The translations under genes and the position numbers were made by a program. The notes below the pieces were generated by a model. That model was given only the letters and a program-made list of their open reading frames with translations. It did no database searches and was not told where the DNA came from. A stretch of DNA of 64,000 nt from Macrostomum lignano (lineage: Eukaryota): the NCBI GenBank assembly GCA_002269645.1, contig NIVC01000810.1, positions 108,620 through 172,619 on the forward strand, written 5' to 3'. Numbering within the stretch: the first letter of the stretch is position 1; each line of letters opens with the position of its first letter. Positions 103 through 51,543 of the stretch are shown here, one piece after another.

Positions 103-2659
103 TCCAACCGAAAATTACTGAGATACTCAACCTGAACTCAATCATGCATGAGGACTTCCACGAGAACTTCACAATCAAGTCGACCAAGGGAAATCCGAGA
201 GTTAATCACAGCTGTTTAGTCAATGGAAAAATAATTGTGAGGCCTCGTACGATCGGGAAGTTTTATTCATTGTAGCGTAGCTAAACCGTGTGAAGTTGAG
301 CAAAACTCTCCAATTTCAGACAATAACTAATCAAATCAGTAATTCGAATAGATCCGAGACCCGCATGACTTTCACGCCTCATAGAAGTCACAGCGAACTT
401 TTGTGCTCAGCTCTGCAGTTGAGCAGCAACTCAGAAGTTGTCTTTAATGCTACTGTCTACAGGAATTTTACAGTTTACTGTAAGTGTCGAATATTTAACC
501 TCATACGTTAAAAATCTTGAACAGGCCTCAATCCTGCTGGTTAAAAATCGCAGACAAGGCCAACAACTCACAGTTTAACAGTCTGAACTCCAACAACGTG
601 ACAGAAGGCAGCGAGTTGAACGTCACGCTGGTGTCAGTTGGAGGCAGACCGCCCGTCAGAAGTTTTAGCTGCTGGGTTGGAGAGGACCAACTCAGTGAAG
701 TGAGTGCAGTGAGCTTTCGAGTACAGCCACATCGGTTATTGATTTCATAACATTACATGATTACAGATCAGACCGGCATCAAATACTTCTTCGATGAAAG
801 AAACATCAAAGAGGCATCTCACGCTTCGAGCGTCTAGAAGGCACCACAACAAGAGCCTCTGTTGCAAGTTTGAGCAGGACGAAGTTCTGACTGAATGGAA
901 TAACAAAAGCTTGGTTATTTTTTGTAAGTATTTTGTTTCCTAATGTAAACTGGGAAAGCAGGATATGCATCATCCAGAATTCTGTACTTTCAGACGAGCC
1001 CTTCGTAAATCTGTCCGACAAAAGCTTTAACGGAACCAGTTTTTCTGCAATGCTGAACATCTCCGATGGCAATCCGAGTCCCGAGACTCGGTGCTTTGCG
1101 GACGGAGTTCAGCTGGTCAGTCAGCCGCAACAAATTTAGTCATATCTTCTAATTACGAGCTATTGCAACTGTCTCATGCTCGTTGTAGAATGACACGGCG
1201 TCAGCTCTTCTGACAGGCCAGGCCACTCACAGCTTGACTCACCTGCTCGAGGCTCACAACGATCAAATCAACATTTCCTGCGTGATTTCGCAACAAGGAA
1301 AAGTGAATTTCTCCAAGACCCATTATTGGGTTCTCAACTCGACAGATGATGCTCCGAGTGAGTATTGCTTCGAATGCTGTGAAATCTATTAATAACTATG
1401 AATTTGAGCATCCAATTCTTTTTGTCTTGGATCTAAAGCTTTCGAGCTTAATTAAAGCCTAATTAAAGTTTGCACGCCAATAATAAAAAAGCAAAGTATT
1501 GATCGAAAGAAGCAAATGCATCGTAGAAGTAGTAGCTTGTGAATCTTTTTCGATAGATTTAGCGATAAACTCAAAAAATAATTTCTTAAATACTTATAAC
1601 AGATAATTAACTATGCTTTGCACTAAAATGTCACGGTCTGGGCTATTTTAAATTCTAGCTAAACTGCCAATCATCCGAGGCAATGGAAACAAAAATCTGC
1701 TATTTCTGCTGCTATTGCTGCTTCTGCTGTTGCTGCTTCTAGTGGCCGTGCCAGTTCTGCTGCGTCGCCGTCGCGGGGTCACCCTGGGAGAGCCGTCGGG
1801 CAAGCAGGTCAATGACTTATATCGCCGCACGTCGTTGGAACTGGAGCAGGACTTCATGCGGTCGCACTACCTGTACAAGGTTGGATTCAGAGAAATTTGT
1901 TGTGTACGAGCTAAAGCGTTAGACAGAAGTTCCAACTTAGGCATGTAGTCACCAGTTGTGGCAACATCTAAACTACCCTGGCGCACTTTAAGCGACATTT
2001 TCACACAACCGGCGAGAGGCATTACTGCCCATTCAGCCGACTCCCCTGAGCAAAGGCACACAAGCGCGCGGATACGTACGCAGTCATACGCACAGGCACA
2101 CACTCACACAGGAGTGAATGAGCGGCCCTAACTTTATTTACACTATGTACACTTCACTGTGCCTTGGAGGTTGGCCCTCAAGGATGTTAATTGCACGAGC
2201 AGAGCCAAGCCGAGATTTCAATTTAGCCCCAAATTAATGCGACTGCACTAGGAATCGAGCCTGGGCCGCTGGCACATCAGAGCGCCACACTGGACCACTG
2301 GGCTACGCCCCCGCATGCGGGATTGGATAAGTCTATGGTCAAACCACGCGATATAGGGCAGGATTGATTATGTCAATAGGTTAGCCTCATCAGACTCAGG
2401 CTCTCGCAAGGCATTTTCCTAATACAAGTAATTTTCCGTAGCAAAAATCCAAGTATTTTTTCCGGTTATATTTTACACTGTTGCACGATACCGAGTTGCT
2501 CTCTGCACCCATTCGCTCTGCCATTTGTAGAATCTACTGAACAACACCGAATATGCCACGGTGATCGGGTCGGGCACTGACCCGTCGGACAGCCTGGAGA
2601 CTCTGTACCTGCACATCGTTGGTCACATGGACGACGATGGGAATATGGTGTTCGCTTGA
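103..2659 (+). CDS. Receptor paralog A (5'-truncated by window): at least 3 Ig-like domains, TM, Tyr-motif tail
   Basis: Hand-spliced exons 103-236, 320-479, 554-699, 767-923, 994-1115, 1189-1357, 1659-1879, 2531-2659, all GT-AG with consistent phases. Ig-like halves such as VTEGSELNVTLVSVGGRPPVRSFSCW and NISCVISQQG. TM LLFLLLLLLLLLLLVAVPVLL followed by RRRR. Tail SLELEQDFMRSHYLYK|NLLNNTEYATV...ETLYLHI, homologous to C and D. Confidence 0.85.
1975..2312 (-). mobile_element. tRNA-derived SINE, family 1 (last intron of paralog A)
   Basis: The minus strand begins with a tRNA-like head (gtagcccagtggtcc...ggctcgattcc, A/B-box-like). The body recurs at about 41765-42052 (+) and 56575-57105 (-). 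Confidence 0.65.
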
Positions 2660-2672
2660 GAGACGCCTTTGT

Positions 2673-4165
2673 ATTGGAGAATTGTATTGGGGGAATTGTA
2701 TTGGGGGAATTGTATTGGGGAATTGTATTGGGGGAATTGTATTGGGGGAATTGTATTGGGGAATTGTATTGGGGGAATTGTATTGGGGGAATTGTATTGG
2801 GGAATTGTATTGGGGGAATTGTATTGGGGGAATTGTATTTTGGGAATCGTACTGGTGAATTTTATTGGGGAATTGTATGGAGGAATTGTACTGGGAAATT
2901 GTATTGAGGAATTGAATTTGAGGGAATTGTATTGGAGGAATTGTACTGGGAAATTGTATTGAGGAATTGAATTTGAGGGAATTGTATTGGAGGAATTGTA
3001 CTGGGAAATTGTATTGAGGAATTGAATTTGAGGGAATTGTATTGGGGGAATTGTACTGGGAAATTGTATTGAGGAATTGAATTTGAGGGAATTGTATTGG
3101 GGGAATTGTATTGAGGAATTGAATTTGAGAAAATTGTATTGGGGGAATTGTACTGGGAAATTGTATTGAGGAATTGAATTTGAGGGAATTGTATTGGTAG
3201 CGATGCTCGTTTAATAAGTAATAGAAAAATGAAGCTTAACACCAACATAAAAGTTTTATTGAATTGTATTGGGGGAATTGTATTGGGGGAATTGTATTGG
3301 GGGAATTTTATTGGGGGAATTGTATTGGGGGAATTGTATTGGGGGAATTGTATTGGGGGAATTGTATTGGGGGAATTGTATTGGGGGAATTGTACTGGGA
3401 AATTGTATTGAGGAATTGAATTTGAGGGAATTGTATTGGGGGAATTGTACTGGGAAATTGTATTGAGGAATTGAATTTGAGGGAATTGTATTGGGGGAAT
3501 TGTATTGAGGAATTGAATTTGAGGGAATTGTATTGGGGGAATTGTACTGGGAAATTGTATTGAGGAATTGAATTTGAGGGAATTGTATTGGTAGCGATGC
3601 TCGTTTAATAAGTAATAGAAAAATGAAGCTTAACACCAACATAAAAGTTTTATTGAATTGTATTGGGGGAATTGTATTGGGGGAATTGTATTGGGGGAAT
3701 TGTATTGGGGGAATTGTATTGGGGGAATTGTATTGGGGAATTGTATTGGGGGAATTGTATTGGGGGAATTGTATTGGGGGAATTGTATTGGGGAATTGTA
3801 TTGGGGGAATTGTATTGGGGGAATTGTATTGGGGGAATTGTATTGGGGGAATTGTATTGGGGGAATTGTATTGGGGAATTGTATTGGGGGAATTGTATTG
3901 GGGGAATTGTATTGGGGGAATTGTATTGGGGGAATTGTATTGGGGGAATTGTATTGGGGGAATTGTATTGGGGAATTGTATTGGGGGAATTGTATTGGGG
4001 GAATTGTATTGGGGAATTGTATTGGGGAATTGTATTGGGGGAATTGTATTGGGGGAATTGTATTGGGGGAATTGTATTGGGGGAATTGTATTGGGGAATT
4101 GTACTGGTGAATTGTATTGGGGGAATTGTATTGGGGGAATTGTATTGAGAGAATCGTATTGGAAG
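2673..4165. repeat. G-rich 14-15 bp minisatellite (GGGGAATTGTATTG)n with an internal 394-bp block duplication
   Basis: Visible tandem array. The AT-rich interruption ggtagcgatgctcg...aagttttatt occurs twice (about 3196 and 3590), offset 394. Confidence 0.95.
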
Positions 4166-5067
4166 AATTGTCTGTAGAATTCAAAATTTTCTAATCTTCC
4201 TTATTGACACTGTTACAACACACCAAAGCATATGCGCTTGTACCCACAGGTATTAACTGCAATGGCCTTTAAATAGGGTCAACATAAAACTTTCTACTTT
4301 ATGCTACTCTGCAACTCCAGTATCTCCAGTTGTATCCAAGCATTTTCCAAGCAATTTCAGCTCAAACTTGAGCTCTGAACTGCATGACTAAAGACTCATC
4401 TCAATGCGGATGCATGATTCAAATAATAGACCCAAACATTTATGAACCACAATGTTTATATTGTACTCCAGCAAGATTCCCCTAAAGGGTATGCAACCGT
4501 ATCTAAGCACTAACTGATACTTTTGTTAGCAAAAGCATCTATAATTCAAATTCGATATGAATTCCTGTTTATTCTGCCCGACTGTGGTTTCAAGTCTTGG
4601 CGACTTTTGTGAATGTTTATGCATTAATATTTGCTTCTAAATATGGAATCATCATTGCGTTTTAGTCACCTGTTTCGTTTAGAAACTCCAAAGACCTGTG
4701 CTCTCCAATCCTGTAAACTATCCGATTCCAGTAACTTTTGACAGTTACTAATTTTAGCATTGCTATCTAATTGAAGAGAGAATGTTTGCTTGTCTGAGAC
4801 AAACATACCAGAGGCATATCACAGTTCAGCATCTTATTCCAGATAATATATAACTTTTTCTTTACATAGAAGACTTTATAACTTCGCTTCCGGCAGAGAT
4901 TGTGGTTGTGGAACTTCTAAGCTAAAACTGACTTTTAAATTCAAAATTACCTGAATGTTCAGGCTAATTTGCAAATTGTGTACGAACTAAAGAGAATGGA
5001 TGGCAGAATGCAGGGAAAGATATTGGGTTTTAGAGTTATTCAACTTTACACCACATGCCTGTCTGAA

Positions 5068-5262
5068 TTAGACAGGATTAGACAAGATTAGACAGGATTA
5101 GACAAGATTAGACAAGATTAGACAAGATTAGACAGGATTAGACAATATTAGACAAGATTAGACAGGATTAGACAAGATTCGACAAGATTAGACAACATTA
5201 GACAAGATTCGACAAGATTCGACAAGATTAGACAAGATTAGACAAGATTAGACAAGAATAGA
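5068..5262. repeat. Decamer minisatellite (TTAGACAAGA)n
   Basis: About 19 visible units. Confidence 0.9.
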
Positions 5263-5494
5263 CCAAATTTTTCAGGATATACCTTTCTCCAATTCATTAA
5301 TTTATATCTAACATTCAACGATTCCGCATTGTAAACGAATCGTGACGAACAACAGACAAGAGAGATCAGTTGCAAAACCTGACTTTATCCAGCACGGATA
5401 TTAAAGCGAATTCGTCCATCTGTTTGATTTGGCCATCACTAGAATAAGAGACAATCAGAAGAATTTTTAAATTATTATTAATTACACCTATCCT

Positions 5495-5750: not shown

Positions 5751-6002
5751 CTGTTTAGAATTTAATTATTAGAAGAATTCAACATTACAACTTACAAAAT
5801 TGTCGAATTTCTGTCTCAACAAGCCGAAAAAATGCCCCCCCCGGATCTCATTGGTCGGCAGTTGCGATCAGTTGGTAAAATTTATACACAGATTTTCTCA
5901 ATAACAAGAAACGCGGCCTCGCACTCTGCTTCAAGGACTACTGAAATTTTTGTAGGCTAAGAAGCTTGGAAACTGCAACTCAAAAACGTTCGCCAATTTA
6001 TC

Positions 6003-9000
6003 ATGAACTATTGCTTGATAATTCTGGCGATTCTCTGTTGCTTCTGGACCTGTGAGTTTGGGAAGGAATTATATATTAAATGGGGAACAGGGACTGAACG
6101 TTTTCATATCAGAAGACCCCGAAATTCAATTCATTTAAATTCATCAACATGTCGACTGAATGAGTCTACATCAGCTGTCAAGCTGAGCTGAGTCAACGAG
6201 GATCATTAAGAGTCTCTATAGACGCCGTCCTGTCGCTAGAGCATGGTGGACTCCAGTTATTGTATCAAGAATTCTATAATTTCCTATGTCTAATCGACAG
6301 TTTCTAGTTTCTAAGCATTCGAAACGATAGTCAAGGGGCTAAAAATACCATCTCGTTCCTCTGTAGTTGTAGTTGTTTTCGAAAAACCTGACCTTGTGAC
6401 AGAATTGTTGAAAAAAAAGCTCATGCAAAAGTTATTCCATGTCCTTGAATTCAATGTGCCTAGTTTCTTCGATGAACATATAAATAGAATAAAAAGGACA
6501 AAAAACTAAAACCTGGGGACCGGGGAGTTGTACGTTAATAATATAGAAGCTTACATCGATTATCACTAAAACTTTACTATTAAATGTATGCTTTTAGCCC
6601 TTAAAAAGTTTAAATTTCTGACCAAATTTTTTTTTCAGGTCGTGCCATCAAGGTCGCCAGAGCTGATATCACCAATGCCTGGCAATCGTATGTGTACTAT
6701 CACTCAGTCTCCAATTGCTTCATCAGATCTATAGACATGAGAGGGCAACGGTTCTATTTTCATACCCACGACACTCCGGACCCCTCCGGCTACCAGTGGC
6801 TGCTGCTGAAACTGACCCGAAGTGTCCCAGTGCGCTCCATCACTTTCTATGGGAGACAGAAGGGTGAGCCCTGTCTCACCTTTTAGTATCAATCTGAACG
6901 ATACGAGTATTTTGCATCTGAATTTTTCAATAAACTTTTCTCAGTCAGCCACAGAGCCCTGGGCATCGAAGTGCTGCTCAGTGAGGAGAAGCCAGCCGGT
7001 CTGGATGAGGATGCACCCAACTGCACTGCAGCCACTTTCAGTCACAGTCTGTCCGGATTCCAACACTGCGGCTTCACCAGAAATGACAGCAGCAAGTCAA
7101 ACAGGTCGCACTTTGTAGATGAAGTGACCTGCTCAGCTGAGTGCGATGTCAAGGTTTGTCACCCAGTTGCTGCAACTCTTTCAATATTGGAATTCGCAGT
7201 GCTGCAGCATCACATTGCAGATGGCGCAGTATGTCCTGCTGAGGGAGTTCGTGGCCAATCAGACTGACAAGATGATGAACTTTGAGCTGCTTGAAATTGA
7301 AAAAGGGGACTGCTTTCGGCATAACAAAGACAGCAGCTCTTGTTGCTCTTCAGCTGACTTCTGTAAAGAACAACACACGGGATGCTTTGTGGAAGACTTG
7401 TCTCAGCTGAGACGCGGTAATGAAGCGATGATTCGAGCTCGGCTCCCAGGAAACTGCAGAGCACCTGCTGCATCAAACTGCAGCATCAGAAACGGTAGTG
7501 ATCTCTTGTATTTGAGTTCGGTAAGAGTTCGATTGAGATAAATACTTGAGCTTGCACCTGATATGGGAATTGAGCAGCACATGTGGGCGTTCGCATTGCA
7601 GAGGGCGACCTTCAATGGCTCTCTGATTCTGGAACCTTTTACAGTGGAGCTGCAGATGCACGGGGCGGAGTTGAAGTGCCGACACCGCTGCAGCGGTGGG
7701 ACTGCGATTGGCACTTCGCACACACTGGGTGTGCAGTCCGCCAGTGAGTCAGGCTGGAAATCAGTTTTCCACAGAAATCTGCATACAAAATGCATACAAA
7801 AATCCATATGGCTATGTTGGATGTTAGTTTGCTTTGCAGGAAAAATATGGGAAATCAAAATGCGGAAGGGTTTGAGTAGTAAGTGGTGCAGGGCTCTCGA
7901 CTGTCTTCATTGTTATGATTGCCTTTCGTTCTAATACTCATGTTTCTTAATTCTGTGGCGGTCACGCCACACGCGCGTATGCGCTCCAGCAGCCACCCCA
8001 ACCCCGGCCGGGGAGGCCGGCACTATGTGCACGGTCGCTGTGCGTTGATTGGCTGCCCAGTGTACACCGCTGGCCAATATAACTTTAGACTTTTGTCTCG
8101 CGCGCCTCCACCCTGCTACTTCAAATAAATTTTACGTGGCTAAACTCGCCACAGAATTAAGAAACATGAGTATTAGAACGAAAGGCAATCATAACAATGA
8201 AGACAGTCGAGAGCCCTGCTCCACTTACTACTCAAACCCTTCCAGAGCCCTGCACCACTCACTACTCAAACCCTTCCAGAGCCCTGCACCACTCACTACT
8301 CAAACCCTTCCAGAGCCCTGCACCACTCACTACTCAAACCCTTCCAGAGCCCTGCACCACTCACTACTCAAACCCTTCCAGAGCCCTGCACCACTCACTA
8401 CTCAAACCCTTCCAGAGCCCTGCACCACTCACTACTCAAACCCTTCCAGAGCCCTGCACCACTCACTACTCAAACCCTTCCAGAGCCCTGCACCACTCAC
8501 TACTCAAACCCTTCCAGAGCCCTGCACCACTCACTTGCTGCTCCCCGCAAACACCAGCTGGACAGACGGAGCAGCTGTCAATCTGACAGCTGACACACCG
8601 GGTTGCTACTGGATGCCAATCAGCCACAGCTGCTCTGTGCAGTCACAGCGAAATGGAAACACAGCGCTTCAGCTGCTGTCAGTGAGTCTCACACTGACCC
8701 ATGGTTGCACCTGTGTATTGGGTGCATGGCAACAATGACCTGACATTTAGCTGTGAAAACTGACTCATTTCAGAGCACGAACTCAAGCAGCACATTCTCA
8801 GTGACTGTGAGCAGGAGCTGGGGAAGCTCAGCATCCGTTTTGTGTCGGGTGAACCAGTCAGGACTGTTCGATGTAACGGCTCGTCGCGAGCTGCCTGCAG
8901 TTCTGTGCAAGTGTCCATGTACTTCTGCTTGTTTTTGGATGCATGTTAAATTTTCGTATTGTCTCTTTCCATAAATTCTTTTGTTAGTTGCCTTGGAGTC

Positions 9001-9818
9001 GATATACTCGAAGTTGGATTTTAAAAATCTAATGCGGAACCAGGTTACCAGTTAAATCTGATGTGGATGTTTAAAAATTATTGATTTAAAACTAATGTGA
9101 CCTCATAGAGGAGCTTTTCATTGTCTGAAATTCTTCAACAGTCCCTCCAGAGAGCATCGACATCTCAGGCCAGCTGCTCAATGGTTTTGACTTGAATCTG
9201 ACTGTGCTTGTGGAGGAGGGAAACCCGAGGCCGGAGCTGCAGTGTCTGCTGAGATCCGAGACTGTCGGAACAATGCAACTAGTGGTACGGTTGGTGTTTT
9301 TACGTCTTCTTTAGACAGTTGATTCACACCTTCAATTCAACTTTGATTGACAGCTGCTGACAGAAGTGGATCTGCGGGGCATCTGCGGTGGTTGGATTCG
9401 GAGAGCTCGAGTGTTCCACCGGTTCAGCGAGCAGCAGGCAGAGACTGCGGTCACGTGCCGCACCAACCAGGCCCGAACTGGCTTCAAAGATCCCAAGTTT
9501 TTGACGGAGAACTCGAAAACTTTTCAAGCCCTGTTCAGTGAGCAAGTCTTTGTGTACTTTTGAAACAGCGGGTCCTAATAAGTGCACAAAGTGATGCTAA
9601 AAGTACATGTACTTTTCTCTGTAGCAAACTGCGAGCTCCTCAAGCCCAGAGGGGTTAATAAAACTGCTGTAATTTGCTGTTCGCTGGCTGCAGTTTCTGC
9701 TGTCTCAGCTGTGGTGGTTTTTGCCTTGCTGAAGCGGCTGCCAGCAACGGGCCGTCGAAGCAAAGCCTCTGCAGTGGAGCTGGCGGCTGCCACAGCGCTT
9801 AGGGCCGCTGACCCGAAC
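6003..9818 (+). CDS. Receptor paralog B: signal peptide, F-type lectin domain, 3 Ig-like domains, TM (3' end not resolved)
   Basis: Exons 6003-6051 (MNYCLIILAILCCFWT), 6639-6863, 6945-7153, 7200-7520, 7602-7743, 8518-8681, 8774-8906 (GC donor gcaagt), 9142-9284, 9354-9537, 9625-9818 (TM AVICCSLAAVSAVSAVVVFALL-KR). All phases join in frame. FTP-like motifs AWQS, RSID, FHT, WLLLKL, YGR..HR, AQYV, LLEIE. Confidence 0.8.
7864..8243. repeat. 97-bp inverted repeat enclosing a 200-bp TG...CA solo-LTR-like core
   Basis: 7864-7960 is the reverse complement of 8147-8243 with 1 mismatch. The core 7954-8153 starts tgtggcg and ends cgccaca and contains CCAAT-type boxes. Confidence 0.85.
8208..8535 (+). 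repeat. 34-bp minisatellite made of the exon-6 splice acceptor of paralog B (9 acceptors)
   Basis: Unit actcaaacccttccag|agccctgcaccactcact, with AG at 8245+34n up to 8517. Homologous arrays: 25686-25890 in C (6 AG) and 39425-39690 in D (7 plus 1 variant). Confidence 0.9.
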
Positions 9819-31900: not shown

Positions 31901-32137
31901 ATCATGAGTACTGCAACTAATTAACCTCTTCGTTTTTTAGGCTTAATTAGGCTTCTGAATCAATGTTGACCGGAAAATCTCAATTTACCCCAGGACCTGT
32001 CCCGCATGGAGTACGCCACGGTGGTCAGTCCCGACCCGTCGGCCCCCCATCGGTCGGACAGTCTCGAGACGATCTACGAGAAGATCATCGGACACATCGA
32101 CGAGCACGGCGAGCTGGTGACGTCATGGGATATGTAG
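13934..32137 (+). CDS. Receptor paralog C: signal peptide, F-type lectin, 5 Ig-like domains, TM, ITSM tail (about 821 aa, apparently intact)
   Basis: 14 exons: 13934-13991, 14215-14439, 14514-14710, 25128-25448, 25530-25671, 25869-26032, 26125-26257, 26623-26771, 26847-27000, 27093-27398, 27489-27616, 27706-27859, 27941-28131, 31994-32137. The summed CDS is 2466 nt with no internal stop. Tail YLYK|DLSRMEYATV...ETIYEKI. Confidence 0.8.
16585..20436 (+). CDS. Gag-Pol polyprotein of Ty3/Gypsy element Y (intact 1283-aa ORF, chimeric N-terminus)
   Basis: Gag with CCHC knuckle CRRCGKTNHFAKMC, protease IDCGA, RT LDLRQGY/IVDDILV, RNase H CDASLDGLG, integrase HHCC and DNGPQF, in PR-RT-RH-IN order. 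Confidence 0.95.
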   Translation: MPRARVQAGSCLHRRLQLGGVLPHQAESRKKAILLHLLGEEGRRRAANVDASKSLQETKTALKAIFSSSRSVIAERFAFRQRAQHDGESIGDYVMALRELATNCKFGTFHDEIIRDQLVEKTCVPRIRERLLMEEDDLTLDDAIKKAERIEAAIRDAKQVSGPELHVKALSKKPKPAARHEKTAAAGPKCTRCGGNHGHKGECKAMGQKCRRCGKTNHFAKMCRMNAVSAIDTKEPAESSLTVLAVNNKSTDSLFCECRLGGQLIRLQIDCGAAVSLINMETFKKSFARHPLLPTSTKLEAYGGSAIKTIGKVELPVTFNGIRTEATFYVADKGANILGRDLFQALGFKIFQGDNRVMSISETTIERDFPGIFDGLGRSKSFIHRTKIDASVKPVSQPMRKLPIGLKDEVTSEISRMEQQGIIEKVDASEWVSNVVVTRKKESNKVRLCVDLRQVNKAVIADRYPVPSIEDLSASINGSKCFSKLDLRQGYQQIPLHPDSRGLTCFITDAGLYQFTVVPFGLSSSGAAFQRALQTVLRGAPGAINIVDDILVHGKDETEHDKNLREVLGRIHREGFTLNREKCKFRQASVDFFGLVISADGIKPTKCNVDAILRIPEPSTVAQIQSFLGAVNFLHKFIPHYSAIAEPLRQLLKKDADWHWGERERTAFRTLKSAVTSSPVLAHFDCQAETYVTCDASLDGLGAVLSQVQNEKEVPIAFASRALSPAEKRYSAGEREALACVWSIERWHYYLYGRRVTLRTDHKALTTLLDSKGMGHRPLRIHRWVERLRGYDVRFEHIPGADNKCADMLSRWATTERVPAEETDEEGYVYAVVDSKTTLTADALATATKEDEVLQAVLQYISGGWPSKVDSSLKPYFNVRDELFCWNNGQCLGRGERAIIPTSLRLQVIEEAHEGHPGVVRSKQRCRDTVWFPGIDRQVEDYVKNCTACTLAEKSGKPQQTIVTPIEWPDGPWDKVEIDIFGEVAAAPRHQRFLLVIHDLYSKWPEIAAMETVTSANIIKTLRKLFGRWGVPKMLISDNGPQFVSDEFEEFLRAEGIKHSRVSRYYPQGNGGVERFNRSLKEGLAANLRAGAKFEDAIDLVLKTYRTSQHALTGLTPAELMIGRKLRSGLQLLRPTPVQQRDDSDLRDSIAQRQAKNADYTNKRRRARDSMLQAGDWVWRQTPYRAHKLATRLKEPLKIASKAGRNTFVLSDGTKWQASRLVKCNSPPADNGAADQEDDWFDLPLPPAPPPRTGEPPPPPELRRSTRARRQPARYPLPEGGRM
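20432..20644 (+). mobile_element. 3' LTR of element Y (no matching 5' LTR)
   Basis: Follows PPT ggaaggggggagaa. TG...CA termini, TATA gtataaatat. Followed by gatac, the presumed TSD. Confidence 0.85.
26322..26575. repeat. 29-bp intronic minisatellite in paralog C (shorter array at 40110-40290 in D)
   Basis: Unit agttagatccaatgcggaaccagttcacc. Confidence 0.9.
28181..28323. repeat. 143-bp near-perfect palindrome (fold-back/MITE-like)
   Basis: 28181-28240 is the exact reverse complement of 28264-28323. The stem extends via tgtcat/atgaca. Confidence 0.9.
29359..31814 (-). mobile_element. Internally deleted Ty3/Gypsy element W in the last intron of paralog C
   Basis: 102-bp LTRs at 29359-29460 and 31713-31814 (1 mismatch). 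PBS tggcgacc on the minus strand. gag/knuckle/protease (LDTGA)/RT (VDDML) in ORF 30045-31856 and RNase H in 29516-30124. No integrase or PPT. Confidence 0.88.
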
Positions 32138-35399: not shown

Positions 35400-37750
35400 G
35401 CTGTAGAGTGAGTAAAGCCGCGAGAGAGAGAGCTATGAATTGTGCTGAACCGAGAAAGCCTCAAACCACATAGAATCGATTTATATTTTTATGTGTCTGT
35501 GACTCTGCACTTAACAATGCGCACACTCAACACCGAGGAATCAACGCGAGGAAGCACACTGGATGTACATAGCGTATGTACAGCGGGAGCATAAATCATT
35601 GCCATACAAGCTACCGGGCACTAGGCACCTCCAATTCTTCTCAAACCGAAAAGATTTCCAGGGGATAAAAAGCAAAAGAAACAAACACAATTACTTGGCT
35701 TTCAGTTCAAGCACCAAAGCAATAAAAAATCTCAGTTTTTAGCTGAGCACACTATCTCCAGCAGTTCTTGGGTGCTCTCGCGTTGCGATGCTACCGCTGG
35801 ATAGGTCGGCGGGCTAGACGGCAGGTGCACCAGTAGCAGGTCGACCAGGGACCGCAGCTGTGAGACTTGGCGCATGTAGGACTGCTCGCCACGCTGCAGG
35901 ACACACGTGTCTCCCCTGGACCTACTTGACTGTCCACGGACGTGGCTCAAACGGCAGCTGCAGTTTGTTTGGTTGACGCTTTCTCAAAACTCTGTTTCCG
36001 ACTCTGAGGCCGTGCTCCTTGACAACCGTGCCGCCATCAAACCGTCCCTTCTTGTTCTGGACATGGTTTTTGTTCCAGCCTTTAACCTCTTCGTGGTTGA
36101 CATTGACGAACTTTGCAGGTTTGATGGTCGGGATGCCGTCGTTAATCGTCCTGCCCATGAAAAGCTCCGCCGGTGCGCGGCCGGTCGCTCGATGTGGCAT
36201 CGTGCGGAACGCCAGCAGCCAGTCCCCGATGGCCTCCCACCAGTTCCGACCTTCGGCCAACGCCGTCTGAATCGCTTTCCCGACGCTGCGGTTGACTCGC
36301 TCCGTCGCTCTGTTGGATTCTGGGTGCAGCGGGCAGATCAGGCGGTGATGGATGCCGTACAAGGCGAGGAAGCTGCGAAAAGCTGCCGAGCAGAACGGTG
36401 GGCCGTTGTCGGTGACCACCTTGATGGGGATGCCGTATCTGCTGAACAGCCTCCGCATGTAGGGGATCACGCTTCCCGCCGTCGTCGAGCATCTGGCCTT
36501 GCACTGGGCAGTAGAAATCCATTCCTAGCAGCCAGGCACCGTCCGGAATATCCATCGGTCTTAAAGGCTGTGGTTGCCTCACTCCGATGGCCGCATCCTG
36601 TGTGCGGCATAGGACGAAGAGGCCCTCGCCGTCTATGATGTGAAAGGTCACGATGGTTCTGGCCGCTCCCACTTTGATTTCAAGGTCGGCGGTTCACAAT
36701 CCTGATGGGTGTCGGTACCCCGTCGGCGTGCCAAGTTCGGCCATTTTAGGAAGTGAACTTGGCAGGCTGAGCGTGCTGAAGGTGCAGAGATCATGATGCT
36801 GCAGCTGGCTCCGCTCTCGATCATCATAAGAGGTCACCTGCACAGTCAGCGAGACGTCGGAGGGGTATTTGTCGCTGTTGAACAGGGTGAACACGTCCTC
36901 GTTGATGGAGCCAGCGGCAGCTGTAAAGACAGCGTTGGTGCTAATTCACTGCTGTTTGACTGCCGAGGCTGACGGCAGGCAAGAGCAGGGGGGTTGGGCC
37001 TTCCGCAGTTGTGGCAGATCTTTCCCTTGGCTGCATTGCAGATGGGGGGGCCTTTCTCGCTGCAGCGGTAGCAGGTGCACTGCGGCTGTCGCCGAGCCTG
37101 CTGTTCATCTGAGCCGGGCCACGCCGGTTCGTCCTCACCTTGTCGCCCTTGGCAACGCTGGCCATGTGCGAGTCTGCCTTCTCCATCTCGGTTCCTCAGT
37201 AGCTTCGAACGCCCTCGCCTTCCGCAGGGCCTCCTCCAGACTGATGTTTGCCTCCTGAAGCAGCCGCCTGCACAGTTTGTCCGAACTGCAGGTTGCTTGG
37301 GTGACTTGGCCGTCCTCTGTGGTCGCAGCAGGCTTGGCCTCCTCGCGGATGATATCGGCGATTTCCGTGCCTGCTGTGTAGCTGGGTAGTTACTTTTGCT
37401 TCTCGTTGGCGATACCTGATGGACGCATCGATGAAATCTTCAAGCCGGGGTTGAACGCGTTGTGAGGGTCTGCTGACACGGAGAATGACTCAGGTGGGGG
37501 CAGTCAGAGAAATTTGGCTGCCATAATAACGCCACTGAGAGTAAAGCCGAGAGAGAGCCGTGTGCCGTGTGGAACCGAAATAGTCTTCAACCCACGTACG
37601 ACTCCGTGTGACCGATTTCAGTTTGTATTTAGCAGCGACTCTGCAGTTGACAGTGCGTACAGTATACACGAGGAAGCACATTGGATGTACATAGCATATG
37701 TACACCAGGAGCATGTCATACAAGCTACGGGCATCAGGGTTGCTACAGAC
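35400..37750 (-). mobile_element. Decayed Ty3/Gypsy remnant between paralogs C and D
   Basis: Integrase core (RLFSRYGIP...TDNGPPF...ERVNR) at 35922-36470. PBS-like tggcagcc at about 37520. Diverged LTR-like segments at about 35400-35620 and 37524-37748 share gaggaagcac..tggatgtacatagc. Confidence 0.75.
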
Positions 37751-40700
37751 ATTCCTGCCTGTACATGTCAATTAAAATGGCTGCTTAGATTTCATTGGAC
37801 AACAGTTGCAGTCTGGGATTAAGTTCTAGGATATAAAATAAAAGATTGCGGTCTTCGGCTGATGCAGGTTAAGTCTTATCAAAGAAAAGTTTCATAAATT
37901 TCCTAATTTACTTGATTCACCATTGCTGAGTTTCTGGAAGCCCTCGCTAACTAGTGCTCTGCTCAAATTCCACTGCAAGAATCGCAGAGTAGCAGACTGC
38001 AATGGACGGTCGGCTGATCCTGATGATTTTCGGATGCAGCTTGTGCTGCTTGAGATTTTGTGAGTCTGTGAAAAAATCCTAATCTATGGGAAGCAAGAGG
38101 AGATTTCAGGCAGAAAAGTCTTTTAAAAGTACTTCTCAGACTTCCTTCAACTTCGAGGAGATTCTACCCTCTGGGAAACTTCTGCTATCAACATTCTCAA
38201 CGTCTGGAGTTTTTCTCTTTGTTTAACTTTGAAGTCGTGAAAAACGTTTCAAGGTCGTGCCATCAAGGTCTCCAGAGCGGAGATCGCCAATGCCTGGTAA
38301 TCTTCTGTCTACAATCACGCAGGCTGCGATTGCTTCATCAGATCAATGGACAAGCCAGGGCAGTGGACCTATTTTCATACCAGCGACACTCCGGACCCCT
38401 CCGGCTACCAGTGGCTGCTGCTGAAGCTGACTCGAAGTGTCCCAGTGCGCTCCATCACTGTCTATGGGAGGCAGGAGGGTGAGTCCTCCCTCACATTTCA
38501 ATATTAATCTGAACGATATATTGAATCAGATATTCTCACTAAACTTTTCTCAGAGAGCCACAGAGCCCTGGGCATCGAAGTGCTGCTCAGTGAGGAGAAG
38601 CCAGCCGGTCTGGATGAGGATGCACCCAACTGCACTGCAGACAATTTGAGTCAGAGTCTTTCCAGATTACAACACTGCGGCTTCACCAGAAATGACAGCA
38701 ACAACTCACATGAAGTGACCTGCTCAGCTGAGGCCGATGTCAAGGTTTGTCACCCAGTTGCTGCAACTCTTTCAATATTGGAATTCGCAGTGCTGCAGCA
38801 TCGCATTGCAGATGGCGCAGTATGTGCTGCTGAGGAAGTTCGTGGCCAATCAGACTGACAAGGTGATGAACTTTGTGCTGCTTGAAATTGAAAAAGGGGA
38901 CTGCTTTCGGCCTAACAAAGACAGCAGCTCTGGTTGCTCTCCAGCTGACTTCTGCAGGCTTTATCAGAGCGGATGCTTTGTGGAAGACTTGTCTCAGCTG
39001 AGACTCGGTAATGAAGCGATGATTCAAGCTCGACTGCCAGGAAACTGCAGAGCACCTGCTGCATCAAACTGCAGCATCAGAATGCGGAACGGCAGTGATC
39101 TCTTGTATTTAAATATGGTAAAAATTCGACTAAGAATACTTGAGCTTGCACCTGATATGGGAATCAAACAGCAAAGGTGGAAATTCACATTTCAGAGTGC
39201 GGTCTCGGCCAGCTCTCTGATTCGGAGAACTTTTAGAGTGCGGCTGTGGATGCACGGGGCGGATTTGAAGTGCCAACACAGCTGCAGTGGTGGGACTGCG
39301 ATTGGCACTTCGCACACACTGGGTGTGCAGTCCGCCAGTGAGTCAGTCTGGCAATCAGTTTTCCTGCTGTCACAGAATTCTGCATTGAAACTGCACACAC
39401 GATTTGAATGCGGCGGGCTTAAAGACCTGCAGAGCCCTGCACCACTCACTACTCAAACCCTTCCAGAGCCCTGCACCACTCACTACTCAAACCCTTCCAG
39501 AGCCCTGCACCACTCACTACTCAAACCCTTCCAGAGCCCTGCACCACTCACTACTCAAACCCTTCCAGAGCCGTGCACCACTCACTACTCAAACCCTTCC
39601 AGAGCCCTGCACCACTCACTACTCAAACCCTTCCAGAGCCCTGCACCACTCACTACTCAAACCCTTCCAGAGCCCTGCACCACTCACTTTCTGCTCCCCG
39701 CAAACACCAGCTGGACAGACGGAGCAGCCGTCAATCTGACAGCTGACACACCGGGTTGCTACTGGATGCCAATCAGCCACAGCTGCTCTGTGCAGTCACA
39801 GCGAAATGGAAACATAGCGCTTCAGCTGCTGTCAGTGAGTCTCAAACTGGCCCATGGTTGCACCTGTGTATTGGGTCCATGGCAACAATGACCTATAATT
39901 TAGCTGTGAAAACTGACTCATTTCAGAGCACGAACTCAAGCAGCACATTCTCAGTGACTGTGAGCAGGAGCTGGGGAAGCTCAGCATCAGTTTTGTGTCG
40001 GGTGAACCAGTCAGGACTGTTCGATGTAACGGCTCGTCGCGAGCTGCCTGCAGTTTTGTGTATGAGTCCATGTACTTCTGCTTGTTCTTGGATGCATGTT
40101 CCCAGTTCACCAGTTAGATCCAATGTGGAACCAGTTCACCAGTTAGATCTAATGCGGAACCAGTTCACCAGTTAGATCCAATGCGGAACCAGTTCACCAG
40201 TTAGACCCAATGGGGAACCAGCTCACTAGTTGCATCTAATGCAGAACCAGTTCACCAGTTAGATCCAATGCAGAACCAGTTCACCTAGTTGCTATAATAA
40301 ACTGCATTTCAGACCGCAGCTCCGGCCTGTCAATCAAGCTGCCTCCCGGACGAATCCGCAGTGGAAGAGAAGCTCAAGTCACCCTGCAGACGCTGGAAAC
40401 AGGAAATCCGCCTGCTCAGCACTTCTGCTCAATCGGTGGAGCCAATCTGAAACAGCTCAGTGTGAGTTTCTCACTGAGAATTTTCAACGCAAAAATTATG
40501 CATAAATTTATAAATTACCGACTTTCCTGACTCCAGCAGCCATCTGAGTCAAGCGCTTCATCAGTGTGGCGACTCAATGCATCGGCCAGCCACAACCAGA
40601 TGAGAATCATCTGCCAGGTCGCTCAGACTCATGCAGACGGCACACTTGTATTCAATCAGTCTGTCAGCAGTGAGCAACTCGATGTGTCATGTGAGTGGAT

Positions 40701-41764
40701 TGCAGTTCAGCATCTCTGATCCATCAGCAACTCAGATTGCTGAGCCAATTAACCATCCATGCTCACACCTGCACGACAACAGACGCGTCAAACAGCTCAT
40801 GGAATGCAACTCAGCCTCTGGTGATGAAGGAGGGCGAGCCTGTGTCAGTCTCAGTTCGGTCAGTCGGTGGCAACCCAGAGCCCAGTCACCGGTGCTGGCT
40901 GCGGACGGCCGAGGGTCTCAGCACCAGCATGACCAGGGCCCAGAACAACCCCGAGGCTCAAAATCTAGGCGTTGAGACGCTGGTGGAATCTGAGTTCAGC
41001 TTGAGTTCCACAAGGCAGATGAACGGAGGCTCCTTGGAGTGCAGGGTCTCTCAGCATGGCCTCGAAGATCTGGATGGCAGATTCACACAGAACGTTACTG
41101 TGTATTGTGAGTTGTCAAAAGTTTGGTTAAAGTTGTTAATTGTGATAACTAATTGCATATTAAATTTAACAGCGTGAAATTTATAGCTTTGTGTGGGCTG
41201 AGAGGTCTTAATACTAGTATAATAAGAACAACAAAAGACGCAACCCAGAGGAGTCAAGTCTTGAGTAAGTCTCTGTAGAGGCTGGGGACAGCAGCTCTCA
41301 ACCTGGATCACGTCGCCGCGGGTTCAAGGAAGGTGAACGGGCGTTGCAGTTGGGCCCAACACTCTCGTCAACTCGAAAGCAGCCCCGAATACACCGAGTC
41401 CTCGTCAGGGTTCACGTCTCGGCGTTGTACAGCGGGAAGCAGCGCTTCTGCTTATTATTGATACTCAATCAAAGCATCCAATGAAAGAATTCCTATATTG
41501 AATATTTACTCAACTACCTTTGTGAATAGTTTTTCGTGACTATAATGGAGACTTAATAATCGCCTAGAATTTTAAAAAATTCCCTTCAGACCAAGCAGAA
41601 GCAAGTTTGTCGATCTCTTTCTTCAACGGAACCCATTTTAACACCACGCTAAGCCCGTCGAAGGAATGGAGAGGAAATCCCAGAGCCAGCGCTCAGTGCT
41701 TCATCGATGGGAACTCTACTGGCTCTGTGAGTCGCTCTGAAGCATGACATTTCCCAGGGGGGGG

Positions 41765-42052
41765 GGGGCGTAGCCCAGAGGTTCAGTGCGGCAAAATTAG
41801 AATCTCGACTTGCCTCTGCTCGTGCAATTAACGCCCAGCTTGAGGGCCAACCCCCAAGGCACAGTGAAGTGTACATGCCTAACGATAAATAAAGTTAGGG
41901 CCGCTGTACACTCCTGTGTGAGTGTGTGCCTGTGCGTATGACTGCCTACGTATCCGCGCGCTTGTGTGCCTGCTCAGGGGAGTCGGCGGAATGGGCAGCA
42001 AAGCCTCTCGCTGGTTGTGCGACAATGTCGCTTAAAGTGCGCCAGGGTGCAC
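41765..42052 (+). mobile_element. SINE family 1 copy in an intron of paralog D
   Basis: Reverse-complement match to 1975-2312 (ttgagggccaacc...cacagtgaagtgtaca...cttaaagtgcgccaggg), with a partial head ggggcgtagcccag. Confidence 0.65.
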
Positions 42053-42592
42053 ACAGACTCTGCCTCTATGCAAAAATGCATGACTGCATGAAACCAATAT
42101 TAAAAAACCATCTTCAGCCGTTTTTTAATGACTCCGTGGAGGATGCAGCAGTTCTGTCTGGCAACACTGACAGCTATCAAGAAAATATTACAATTTCTTG
42201 TTTGATTACACAGAGGGAAATCTTTAATTTCACGATAAAGCGGAGCTGTTCATCTTTGCAATCAGCAGGTAAGGCCGCTTATGTCTCCCTGTTGACATAT
42301 GGAGATCAACAGAAATGAACATTCGAGTAGCAATTATTAGAATTTTAGGAGTCACTAGATGCAACAAAGGGAAGTCGGACGAACAAAGCAGTTTTCTACC
42401 AGTTCTGTTCGGCCTGCTGTCGTTGCTGCTTCTAGTAGTTGCGTTATCGATTTACTTTTACCGAAAGCGCATCGGTGCGGGACCGTCGGCCCTCGAGCTG
42501 GAGCAGGAGTACAGGAAATCGCACTACCTGTACAGGGTGGGTAGCTTGGTTGCATTCCATAATTGGTATCTCATTTTTGATGTGCTGGCGCC

Positions 42593-42977
42593 CCTGGTGC
42601 TAAAGCCCCTGGTGCTAAAGCCCCTGGTGCTGGCGCCCCTGGTGCTAAAGCCCCTGGTGCTAAAGCCCCTGGTGCTGGCGCCCCTGGTGCTGGCGCCCCT
42701 GGTGCTGGCGCCCCTGGTGCTGGCGCCCCTGGTGCTGGCGCCCCTGGTGCTGGCGCCCCTGGTGCTGGCGCCCCTGGTGCTGGCGCCCCTGGTGCTGGCG
42801 CCCCTGGTGCTGGCGCCCCTGGTGCTGGCGCCCCTGGTGCTGGCGCCCCTGGTGCTGGCGCCCCTGGTGCTAAAGCCCCTGGTGCTGGCGCCCCTGGTGC
42901 TAAAGCCCCTGGTGCTGGCGCCCCTGGTGCTGGCGCCCCTGGTGCTAAAGCCCCTGGTGCTAAAGCCCCTGGTGCTG
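42593..42977. repeat. 15-bp GC-rich minisatellite in the last intron of D
   Basis: Units gcccctggtgctggc / gcccctggtgctaaa. Confidence 0.95.
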
Positions 42978-44084
42978 GTCTTATAGAGACGGAAGAGAGA
43001 ATAATTAGTTAATTACTATGCATTTAAGCCTCATCTACCTGAACCGGTTTACCCAGGACCTGTCCCGCATGGAGTACGCGACGGTTGTCAGTCCCGACCC
43101 ATCGGCCCCCCGTCTGTCGGACAGTCTCGAGACGATCTACGAGAAGATCATCGGACACATCGACGAGCACGGCGAGCTGGTGACGTCATGGGATATGTAG
43201 GGCTGGGGGATCGTAAGGCGATCAAGGCAGATGAACTTTTCTGTAACTAACAGGTGTGCTGTGCTGTAGACATCAAAGCTCAGCTTCTTCAAGTTCCGAT
43301 TTTTAAAAATTAACGGAGAGACTCCGAGAGAGACCCTCATTTACTCAAGATTTCTCTGTGCTTTTCTGTTTTTTATAGAGAATGACTTTTTTAAGCTTCC
43401 GAACTTTGTAATAACTATAATTATTTCGGCAAAGACTTTTGCTTCACTAATAGCTTATGATTGGTTATTCAGATATCTTTATGCTAACTAAAACTATTCC
43501 TGAAACTGCAACTGGCTGCTGTCGAAACATTACGAACTAGAATTTAATATTTTTATCAATAGTAGCACTAACGATGCCGTTTGAGATATTTTTATTCAGG
43601 CAGAATATATAAATGCTCAAAATTTACTAAAAATACCCGACAATAACAGGTATGGCGCGTTTACCATAAGCGCTTAAACCAAATTTGCTTTCCCCTGACG
43701 CATGCTCCCATCTGTTTGTGCATAATTAGTGGCTAATCTGGTAACGGATGTGTGCGCTAGCGGTGGTCAGCCGACCGGCTTTCTCACAGATTCACCAGCA
43801 ATCTACACTGAACCAGTTCAAGCGCTGATTTGGATATCAAATTTATTAATAGAGAGAGAAAACCGCTATTTAAAGTGGGCTTGGTTACAAATATCCGGGT
43901 TTGATGTTGATAGCTGCTATCAATATCGATTGATTTGCTTTAAATAGCACTGGTGAATGCTAGCCTATAGTGATGTTATTTCCATTGCAATCAACTTCAG
44001 TCCCTGAAGCTGTAGCCATGCCCCGATTAAACATTGGATCAGCTGCTGAGCCGCTTAATAAACATTGGTCTAATATGAAATTCT

Positions 44085-45347: not shown

Positions 45348-51543
<6,196 letters not shown>

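Follow-up and report, generated by a model that had tools for sequence, protein, structure and literature searches.

A tandem array of candidate receptor genes with F-type-lectin-like heads and Ig-like stalks in Macrostomum lignano

Gene content of the array

The window, a stretch of 64,000 nucleotides of the Macrostomum lignano genome, contains four same-strand paralogs (103-43200, plus strand), the domain order of which was read from exons spliced by hand. The bounds are exact: the first acceptor of gene 1 lies at position 103, and the stop codon of gene 4 ends at position 43200. AG acceptors and GT donors are present throughout the four splice models and the phases agree, which bears out the initial annotation both in the number and orientation of the paralogs and in the order of signal peptide, lectin-like head, linker, Ig-like repeats, transmembrane segment and tail; the 4-Cys linker, transmembrane segment and tyrosine-bearing tail that it listed were each found in the genes. 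Searches by tblastn located three copies of the N-terminal exon (at 6638, 14214 and 38253), gene 1 having none because its 5' end precedes the window start, and found no more paralogs between 43.2 and 64 kb with the gene 3 protein as query. The four genes are:

103-2659, plus strand: gene 1, three Ig-like repeats, transmembrane segment and tail; 8 exons with AG/GT borders, 5' end outside the window (103-236, 320-479, 554-699, 767-923, 994-1115, 1189-1357, 1659-1879 with the transmembrane segment, 2531-2659 with the tail)
6003-9818, plus strand: gene 2, short paralog; 10 exons (6003-6051, 6639-6863, 6945-7153, 7200 or 7221-7520, 7602-7743, 8566-8681, 8774-8912, 9142-9284, 9354-9537, 9625-9818)
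13934-32137, plus strand: gene 3, the intact copy that serves as reference for the family; an 807-aa ORF free of stops across 14 exons, each with GT-AG borders
38002-43200, plus strand: gene 4, full-length paralog; 14 exons, 814 codons (exons 1-7: 38002-38059, 38254-38478, 38554-38744, 38791 or 38812-39117, 39196-39337, 39719-39834, 39927-40065; exons 8-14: 40313-40461, 40537-40690, 40783-41106, 41590-41726, 42118-42268, 42349-42536, 43057-43200)
38298-38300, plus strand: in-frame TAA (Q35*) in exon 2 of gene 4, within the AWQSS motif, where genes 2 and 3 read CAA/CAG

The frame of gene 1, a close relative of the UniProt model P0006, is open through to a TGA with consistent splice phases. Gene 2 encodes a signal peptide, an F-type-lectin-domain (FTLD)-like head, the linker, a module of about 85 aa, two Ig-like repeats and a transmembrane segment; neither a sequence like exon 14 nor an ORF bearing an ITIM or ITSM was found within 9.8-13.9 kb. 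Q35* is the single nonsense codon of gene 4, which is therefore likely a pseudogene, unless the stop marks a null allele or comes from an error in the assembly. Gene 3, with 26 canonical splice sites kept intact, was taken as the reference for the parts of the receptor:

13934-13991, plus strand: exon 1, signal peptide MPRLLILVAFVCSLCCFRC, by direct reading of the sequence
14215-14439 and 14514-14710, plus strand: exons 2-3, first two thirds of the F-type-lectin-like domain, by profile match to 3CQO/1K12, AlphaFold2 (AF2) and Foldseek
25128-25238, plus strand: 5' part of exon 4, last third of the FTLD-like domain (MAQYVLLRKF...LLEIEKSD)
25239-25448 (3' part of exon 4) and 25530-25671 (exon 5), plus strand: Cys-rich linker and module of about 85 aa
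25917-26032 with 26125-26263, 26623-26771 with 26847-27000, 27093-27398, and 27489-27616 with 27706-27859, plus strand: Ig-like repeats 2-5, by the profile of alignment A4
27941-28131, plus strand: exon 13, stalk, transmembrane helix FFLFLFGLLPLLLLAVAMPIF and juxtamembrane segment LELELEFRKSHYLYK, by direct reading
31994-32137, plus strand: exon 14, cytoplasmic tail with MEYATV and TIYEKI, by motif reading
14890-24800, plus strand: nested Ty3/gypsy LTR retroelements in intron 3, not part of the receptor, by pol domains and an LTR pair
8210-8535, 25686-25886 and 39430-39688, no strand assigned: 34-bp minisatellite in intron 5 (9.6, 5.9 and 7.6 copies by TRF)

The phase-1 GTGAGT donor of exon 1 is common to genes 2, 3 and 4, as are tandem CAG acceptors, 21 nt apart, at exon 4; the downstream acceptor is probably the one used (25149 rather than 25128 in gene 3), because it fits the spacing in the RNA-seq-based P0012 and in UniProt models. 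The frame of the linker and the following module was chosen because every other frame is closed in at least one of the three paralogs. The minisatellite is not coding sequence; it is open in all three frames, and deposited gene models count its last unit as coding. The retroelements fill about 10 kb of intron 3 and include an intact pol ORF (16576-20433, with RVT_1, RNase H and rve domains) between LTR copies that are 100% identical (16001-16300 and 20645-20944), flanked by decayed gag and pol ORFs.

The N-terminal domain

The head, an N-terminal domain of about 175 aa, contains the pattern on which an F-type-lectin fold had been proposed (AWQSS, FHT, WLLLKL, GR..HR, AQYV, LLEIE). A profile of diverse family members (A3) matched only two of 177,635 PDB sequences, both of them F-type lectins (FBP32, 3CQO, E 1.7e-7; eel agglutinin, 1K12, E 0.09), aligning AWQSS with ATQSS, W-LL-KL with WWRVDL, and GR..R..GIEV with NR..R..GAEI; in hhalign the head matched an FTP unit of a copepod protein (E 8e-5). 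Among the checks that had been proposed, Pfam gave no match to the heads of the window genes, the family member P0011 having weak matches to F5_F8_type_C_2 and F5_F8_type_C, whereas the fold search agreed with the profile: the AF2 model of the head (pLDDT 67, pTM 0.71, residues 1-35 unreliable) retrieved CBM32, the muskelin discoidin domain, the lectinolysin F-type lectin domain, 1K12, 3CQO and 2J22 in Foldseek, at TM-scores of just 0.34-0.46. Profile and model thus point to a head related to F-type lectins, as a divergent jelly roll.

The strict fucose motif of F-type lectins is HX24RXDX4(R/K) (PMC5712786). In the family heads a His stands 30 residues ahead of the Arg, the canonical His position faces Pro or Asp in the HMMER alignment, and the acidic residue varies; the Ca motif hhDGx does not occur in them. 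Because the canonical fucose and Ca motifs are just partly kept, the head is considered a putative sugar binder only.

The stalk and the cytoplasmic tail

In the alignment of the stalk repeats (A4), two Cys are invariant and a GNPxP motif recurs. The A4 profile matches SYG-2 (E 4.8e-5), nectin-4, titin, CADM4 and CD86, with Siglec-8 among the weak Ig matches, and Pfam matches the repeats weakly to C2-set_2 and Ig_3; these matches support C2-set Ig-like repeats. Their disulfide is shifted: strand B lacks its normal Cys, and the position of the C-strand Trp is taken by a Cys. The profile of the module that follows the linker matches nothing in the PDB. As this module is not demonstrably Ig, the initial annotation was right about Ig-like repeats and too generous with their number, given as three to five: those verified run from two (gene 2) to four (genes 3 and 4).

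Tyrosine-based, ITSM-like motifs of the form TxYxx(I/V) were read in the tail exons, as had been claimed. The tails conserve a juxtamembrane consensus, LELExx(F/Y)xxSHYLY (the form LELELEFRKSHYLYK of gene 3 being common to genes 1 and 4 and P0006), and a distal pair, (M/T)EYATV followed 17-21 residues on by T(I/L)Y(E/L)(K/H)I, which in gene 1 reads TEYATV and TLYLHI. These tyrosine motifs are conserved islands where the tail of gene 1 otherwise diverges from those of genes 3 and 4. With Met at position -2, MEYATV departs from the canonical ITIM.

The stalk invites an explanation of the proteins as adhesion molecules of the nephrin, SYG-2 or nectin type, with a head for protein or homophilic binding, as proposed for Drosophila Furrowed, and a role in organising tissues or wiring the nervous system. 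The Ig repeats are matched best by adhesion proteins (SYG-2, nectin-4, CADM4, titin), the sugar and Ca motifs of the head are degenerate, FTLDs without the basic triad, such as CG9095, have been noted (PMC5712786), and purifying selection extends over most of the protein. This explanation is nevertheless rather unlikely, since one expects a paired TxYxx(I/V) tail of an immunoreceptor rather than of nephrin or nectin, and tandem expansion in one lineage, with pseudogenes, is unusual for core adhesion genes.

Evolution of the family

Homologs of full-length gene 3 are found only among M. lignano proteins. The head profile matches 16 proteins among 1.84 billion, and the 14 that were traced comprise 13 from M. 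lignano and one FTP-repeat protein of the copepod Tigriopus. Family proteins are already present in UniProt and GenBank as uncharacterised entries. One of these, P0012 (PAA49974.1, 804 aa), is a transcript-based model from a GenBank annotation built from RNA-seq and has the same architecture: its head is 40% identical to that of gene 3, and its sequence reads as a hydrophobic N-terminus, Ig repeats, a transmembrane segment and a tail with VVYAQV...TEYTEI. Two reviews of F-type lectins do not give Ig among the partner domains of the FTLD, and a literature search found no published description of a family with lectin head and Ig stalk, in agreement with the suggestion that the combination with ITSM is undescribed. 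The array thus appears to belong to an uncharacterised, lineage-specific M. lignano family in which known modules are newly combined.

Genes 3 and 4 are 96.5% identical in exon 14 and just 72% in exon 13, a mosaic pattern that looks like gene conversion. The description of the cluster as rapidly evolving fared poorly: dN/dS is 0.2-0.7 for most parts (head 0.46-0.67, tail 0.19) and exceeds 1 in only one small module, adjoining the head, on few substitutions. That module, together with the multi-copy, lineage-specific character of the family, would suit recognition on sperm, egg or mating surfaces, comparable to oyster bindin, an F-type lectin diversified under sexual selection; F-type-lectin reviews call bindins gamete-recognition lectins, and Macrostomum is reported to have fast-evolving reproduction-related genes (PMC7336406). 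A reproductive role is improbable, however, as dN/dS of the head itself is below 1 and bindins are secreted FTLD repeats without a transmembrane segment or signalling tail.

Gene 3 is intact, gene 4 has one nonsense codon, gene 2 is short, and gene 1 is cut by the window edge. The copies in the window were seen only in WormBase-type predictions, mis-spliced, and were absent from the RNA-seq-based GenBank protein matches. On one reading they are duplicates that have lost their function and are decaying, in a genome rich in repeats and partly duplicated, and functional genes would be found solely among distant paralogs such as P0012; the nonsense codon of gene 4, the missing tail exon of gene 2, the retroelements of gene 3 with their young element, and the known redundancy of the assembly would also fit it. 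We judge this explanation very improbable: gene 3 retains 807 codons and all of its canonical splice sites, dN/dS stays under 1 for the majority of domains, the tail being strongly conserved, and absence from the GenBank set could be due to the removal of repeat-overlapping transcripts from that annotation.

Proposed function

The explanation that we favour, with moderate confidence, is that the genes encode M. lignano-specific type I receptors, arranged in tandem, with a lectin-like head, an Ig stalk and a tyrosine-signalling tail, and that the array evolves through duplication, gene conversion and decay. Outside the cell, the head would bind a ligand that is most probably a glycan but need not be fucose, and the stalk would lift the head above the glycocalyx. 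Clustering of receptors by ligand may lead to tyrosine phosphorylation of the paired tail motifs, which could then become docking sites for SH2 proteins of the SHP-phosphatase or SAP type, like the ITIM/ITSM pairs of PD-1, PECAM-1 and CD33-type Siglecs. A role in immunity or in self/non-self recognition is conceivable.

Comparison with known systems

The heads share A-QSS, W..(V/L).L, (N/G)R....R..G.E(I/V) and (G/A)(R/Q)YV with the F-type lectins AAA of eel (1K12) and FBP32 of striped bass (3CQO). Unlike the flatworm proteins, classic F-type lectins are secreted proteins that contain one or two FTLDs but lack Ig domains, a transmembrane segment and a tail; the flatworm head, in turn, is without the canonical His-Arg-Arg spacing or Ca motif and is not detected by Pfam, and its fucose binding is putative. 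In Drosophila Furrowed/CG9095, compared by description only, an FTLD with a degenerate sugar triad likewise caps the repeat-built stalk of a type I membrane protein (PMC5712786), but that stalk consists of CCP (sushi) repeats and a C-type lectin domain rather than Ig, and no ITIM/ITSM-type tail is described.

Nephrin/SYG-2, nectins and CADMs are the closest matches to the stalk, GG-NP-P aligning with GGNPPP of SYG-2, but they keep the canonical disulfide between strands B and F as well as the C-strand Trp, lack a lectin head, and differ in their tails. The Hydractinia Alr and Botryllus fuhc-linked receptors are also lineage-specific tandem IgSF clusters with unusual Ig domains and tyrosine motifs; they differ in having no lectin head and in their documented allorecognition and extreme polymorphism, and M. 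lignano, unlike these animals, is solitary.

PD-1, PECAM-1 and the SLAM family resemble the array in having two tyrosine motifs, including TxYxx(V/I). The ITSM of PD-1 is TEYATI, nearly identical to TEYATV of gene 1, and a spacing of about 20-25 residues between paired ITIM/ITSM motifs suits tandem-SH2 phosphatases. No sequence homology extends beyond these short motifs, from which phosphorylation and SH2 recruitment are predicted in the flatworm.

The CD33-related Siglecs have a V-set Ig head with a sialic-acid-binding Arg where the flatworm head is a predicted jelly roll, and head and tail are without homology; the term Siglec-like is therefore an analogy, which fails as a statement of descent and holds for the overall design: a distal head of glycan-binding type, a C2-set Ig stalk, a single transmembrane segment, and two spaced tyrosine motifs (an ITIM and an ITIM-like motif or ITSM).

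Gene models of the receptor array

The best-supported reading of the array is a set of lineage-specific type I receptors in which a lectin-fold head is carried on an Ig stalk and the tail has tyrosine motifs. The initial annotation placed four same-strand paralogs with spliceable exons at 103-43200, and both points hold: the interval fits the array because its start is gene 1's first acceptor and its end the stop codon of gene 4, and exon models built by eye and by paralog-to-paralog mapping have AG...GT at every junction, with phases concordant between paralogs. A tblastn search of the window, which is eukaryotic in content with abundant minisatellites and LTR retroelements, located three + strand copies of the lectin-like exon (at 6638, 14214 and 38253), and no further receptor copies were found in the window from 43.2 to 64 kb.

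Principal features of the window
From acceptor 103, + strand: gene 1, three Ig-like repeats, TM exon and tail
6003-9818, + strand: gene 2, exons 1-7 as in its paralogs, then one further Ig-like repeat and a TM exon
13934-32137, + strand: gene 3, 14 exons, an 807-aa protein without interruption
38002-43200, + strand: gene 4, 814 codons with a single TAA at 38298-38300
8210-8535, 25686-25886 and 39430-39688: 34-bp minisatellite in intron 5 of genes 2, 3 and 4 (9.6, 5.9 and 7.6 copies, respectively)
14890-24800, about 10 kb: nested Ty3/gypsy LTR elements in intron 3 of gene 3
46493-51564, - strand: bestrophin gene (Pfam Bestrophin, C-terminal end 46493-47173, N-terminal end 51184-51564)
53630-57504, + strand: coiled-coil gene (Pfam NYD-SP28 'sperm tail' domain, 54291-55073)

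Three exon boundaries allow more than one choice. Exon 5 has two frames compatible with the splice phases, and the frame adopted is the only one open in all three paralogs; the alternative (donor 7416, 'GDLQWLSDSG...' frame) is ruled out by stops in genes 3 and 4. Of the two CAG acceptors of exon 4, 21 nt apart, the downstream one is favoured because it agrees with the deposited models and with the spacing of P0012, a paralog based on RNA-seq, which makes the upstream one, adding CCSIALQ, now the less likely of the two. The acceptor of exon 6 is treated as lying at 8566/25917/39719, with the 34-bp minisatellite intronic; deposited UniProt models splice into the last 34-bp unit (KPCTTHFLLPANTSW), and both acceptors are compatible in phase. 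A coding role for this minisatellite was rejected, as its unit is not a multiple of 3, its copy number varies and all three of its frames are open.

Introns of the array contain other minisatellites, including a 29-bp repeat in intron 7 of genes 3 and 4 (26301-26575 and 40102-40290) and a 15-bp repeat (GTGCTGGCGCCCCTG, 26 copies) in intron 13 of gene 4 (42582-42978), which gives rise to long spurious 'APGAG' ORFs in both orientations. Directly downstream of gene 1 (2669-4171) comes a 14-bp repeat with about 108 copies. Outside the array are a TCACC pentamer array of 186 copies (44085-45015), several minisatellites in the introns of the bestrophin gene, and a 23-bp satellite of at least 97 copies (61764-64000) that continues past the window end. 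The coiled-coil gene at 53630-57504 is likely to encode a dynein regulatory complex (DRC1-type) ciliary protein.

Relatives of the receptors in protein databases

A search with the full-length gene 3 protein retrieved only six clusters, all of them Macrostomum lignano 'Ig-like domain-containing protein' entries that represent close paralogs in fragmentary or mis-spliced form. An HMMER search of 1.84 billion representative proteins with a profile of the head found 16, and of the 14 whose source was traced 13 are from M. lignano. The remaining one, P0019 of Tigriopus californicus, has four F5_F8_type_C / F5_F8_type_C_2 units and the UniProt name 'Fucolectin tachylectin-4 pentraxin-1 domain-containing'. 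A second, word-indexed homolog search with the head profile that includes divergent paralogs (A3) added only five M. lignano fragments.

The divergent full-length member P0012 (PAA49974.1, 804 aa) has a head 40% identical to that of gene 3 by BLASTP, with matches extending over the Ig repeats; read by eye, its sequence is hydrophobic at the N-terminus, contains a TM segment and carries VVYAQV and TEYTEI in the tail. As the GenBank annotation of M. lignano derives from a genome-guided RNA-seq assembly from which repeat-overlapping transcripts were removed (PMC5730564), the head-Ig-TM-tail architecture is backed by an RNA-seq-derived model of this paralog, not of the window copies. Another M. 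lignano UniProt model from outside the window, P0014, has a tail-like start (TVYYYEENPALPDRPP...EFYVQ) and an almost identical end, with a head between them. Annotation has apparently joined two tandem family members here, which suggests that the family has tandem arrays, with a different tail type, elsewhere in the genome. Public entries of the family are named 'Ig-like domain-containing' or carry misleading automatic names, are uncharacterised and have no lectin annotation, and the deposited gene models are mis-spliced around intronic minisatellites.

The N-terminal head

Pfam gave no significant match to the gene 2 head or to full-length gene 3, and a profile of near-identical heads (A1) retrieved nothing relevant from the PDB, its one chance match being a thioredoxin (E 0.55). 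Profile A3, compared with 177,635 distinct PDB sequences, gave two matches only: 3CQO, the striped bass FBP32 (E 1.7e-7, to both F-lectin domains), and 1K12, the eel fucolectin (E 0.09). The sequence diversity contributed by distant paralogs was thus needed for a match that A1 did not give. The head also aligns with an F-type lectin unit of the copepod protein (hhalign, E 8e-5), and the family member P0011 has weak Pfam matches to F5_F8_type_C_2 and F5_F8_type_C.

AF2 models were made from exon-level pieces and database paralogs. The first, on a shallow alignment, reached pLDDT 56.6 and generic jelly-roll matches only; with a diverse alignment the head model reached pLDDT 67.2 and pTM 0.71, its first 35 residues being unreliable. 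The top Foldseek ranks, CBM32, the muskelin discoidin domain, the lectinolysin F-type lectin domain (FTLD), 1K12, 3CQO and 2J22/SpX-3, have TM-scores of just 0.34-0.46, which fits the galactose-binding-domain-like superfold without separating F-type lectins from discoidin or CBM32. The F-type lectin head originally proposed is therefore upheld by sequence homology to 3CQO and 1K12, and by the fold model only as far as the superfold. Overall, we take the head to be a divergent F-type lectin / discoidin superfold domain whose nearest relatives by sequence are F-type lectins.

FTLDs have a fucose motif HX24RXDX4(R/K) and a calcium motif hhDGx, and examples with degenerate triads exist (PMC5712786). 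The family departs from the fucose motif in having the pattern H-X30-R-X-(E/N/K/V/A/P)-X3-4-R; in the family alignment both Arg positions are retained and the acidic residue is variable. In the HMMER alignment the canonical His falls on Pro or Asp of 'SDTPD' and the family His is 3-5 residues upstream of it, a displacement that comes from a His-to-Trp distance four residues greater than that of the eel agglutinin and FBP32. At the calcium motif the aligned residues are (R/N)S(M/I)D(K/M)(P/R)G, unrelated in divergent members, and the DG dipeptide is absent. Because the head departs from both motifs, lectin activity is only a possibility.

The Ig stalk

Alignment of 14 Ig-repeat units from several members (A4) gives two invariant Cys and the motifs GNPxP and CxVxQ. 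The best 60 matches of the resulting profile in the PDB are Ig-superfamily chains only, including SYG-2 (E 4.8e-5), nectin-4 (0.015), titin, CADM4 and CD86, and among the matches listed are also the Siglec-8 C2 domain and antibody constant domains. Pfam C2-set_2 matches 3 of the 14 repeats weakly (best E 4.5e-4), and Ig_3 is weak too. The first invariant Cys aligns with the C-strand Trp of SYG-2 (GGNPPPDVFW), and the B-strand position is occupied by V, R, S or T, so that the repeats have neither the canonical B-F disulfide nor the C-strand Trp; with a Cys in place of this Trp and the B-strand Cys missing, they may form a shifted, C-to-F strand disulfide. The approximately 85-aa module ('Ig1') that separates the Cys-rich linker from the first clear repeat had no PDB match by profile, so it is given no domain class.

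An adhesion molecule of the nephrin/nectin type, to which the matches to SYG-2 and nectin-4 would point, or one like Furrowed is a rather unlikely identity for the array. Should sugar binding have been lost from the head, the receptors would simply be a lineage-specific adhesion/signalling group of the Ig superfamily, of interest mainly to flatworm biologists.

The cytoplasmic tail

The ITSM consensus is TxYxx(V/I) and that of the ITIM (S/I/V/L)xYxx(I/V/L). The tails contain MEYATV and TIYEKI in genes 3 and 4 and TEYATV and TLYLHI in gene 1; gene 2 has neither motif of the pair. TIYEKI, TEYATV and TLYLHI match the ITSM, and MEYATV is non-canonical at position -2; the pair in P0012 is one ITIM-type (VVYAQV) and one ITSM-type (TEYTEI) motif. 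The tail tyrosines are spaced 17-26 residues apart. Between genes 3 and 4 the tail exon is 96.5% identical, versus about 65-77% for the preceding exons, and the tail dN/dS is 0.19. The tail of gene 1 is far more diverged, with two islands kept, TEYATV and DSLET(L/I)Y..I.GH.D..G. The tyrosine-motif pairs of PD-1, PECAM-1 and CD33-type Siglecs engage tandem-SH2 phosphatases, and by analogy the paired motifs of the flatworm tails would do the same.

Evolution of the array

Genes 3 and 4 show a mosaic of identity: exons 6-9 and 14 share 96-98%, and the introns across that block 89-96%; exons 10-13 share 65-77%, and the introns there are unalignable; exons 1-5 share 74-92%. Such a mosaic is consistent with gene conversion or unequal exchange within a tandem array.

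The array had been described as rapidly evolving, a view that the substitution rates do not bear out: dN/dS is 0.46-0.67 for the head and below 0.5 for most Ig repeats, and exceeds 1 only in one repeat, on seven substitutions, and in the approximately 85-aa module (25239-25671 and paralogous exons), whose ratios, 1.2 and 2.3 from few changes, are the highest in the protein. We do not regard this pattern as evidence of diversifying selection. Bindin-like reproductive recognition proteins are an improbable identity for the array.

A nonsense codon interrupts one of the four copies (the TAA of gene 4 replaces the Gln of AWQSS present in genes 2 and 3), and another is tail-less (no tail exon of gene 2 was found in 9.8-13.9 kb). 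Two such lesions could be read as a decaying set of duplicates; set beside the uninterrupted gene 3 and the low dN/dS of the tail, decay of the whole set is very improbable.

Within the nested elements in intron 3 of gene 3, a young inner Ty3/gypsy element (about 16001-21300) with 100% identical LTRs (16001-16300 versus 20645-20944) and an intact pol ORF (1286 aa, 16576-20433; RT, RNase H and integrase domains) is surrounded by an older, frame-broken one. Two retroelement remnants lie on the - strand, one in intron 13 of gene 3 (29519-31877, with a 610-aa ORF containing RT) and the other in the interval from gene 3 to gene 4 (35925-37439, with integrase and gag-like ORFs).

Comparison with F-type lectins and Siglecs

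F-type lectins are known in secreted form or in fusions with CCP, C-type lectin, pentraxin or FA58C modules; two reviews of them (including PMC5712786) name CTLD, HTLD, pentraxin, CCP, TM and FA58C as partner domains, with Ig absent. Literature searches on an FTLD-Ig architecture, on Macrostomum immune or lectin receptors and on the locus tags found no account, although a 2015 survey (Bishnoi et al.) may list FTLD with Ig. This agrees with the earlier impression that the F-type lectin, Ig and ITSM combination is undescribed. The proteins were already in public databases, and what appears to be new is the union of lectin head, Ig stalk and tyrosine-motif tail. Such a version would give the F-type lectin family a signalling receptor class. 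It also holds a lesson for annotation, in that standard domain scans miss the head and families of this kind stay hidden unless paralog profiles are used.

The head of a Siglec is an N-terminal V-set Ig domain with a sialic-acid-binding Arg, whereas that of the array is an FTLD-related jelly roll and not an Ig domain. The Siglec design suggested by the initial annotation therefore applies below the head, where the array too has a C2-set stalk, a single TM segment and an ITIM-like/ITSM tail, a match at the level of motifs only; the design is common to both, without homology of head or tail. It is conceivable, though on balance doubtful, that the flatworm independently built a Siglec-like class in which an F-type-lectin head would read a self or microbial glycan and the ITIM/ITSM tail would signal to an SHP-type phosphatase. 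RNAi and transgenesis are established in M. lignano, a regenerating flatworm that is experimentally tractable. If the Siglec-like reading is true, this would be the first described FTLD-Ig-ITSM architecture, and the array would be this animal's convergent equivalent of the Siglecs of vertebrates. Glycan-checkpoint receptors that signal through tyrosine motifs would then exist in a bilaterian outside the vertebrates, with another lectin fold as their basis.
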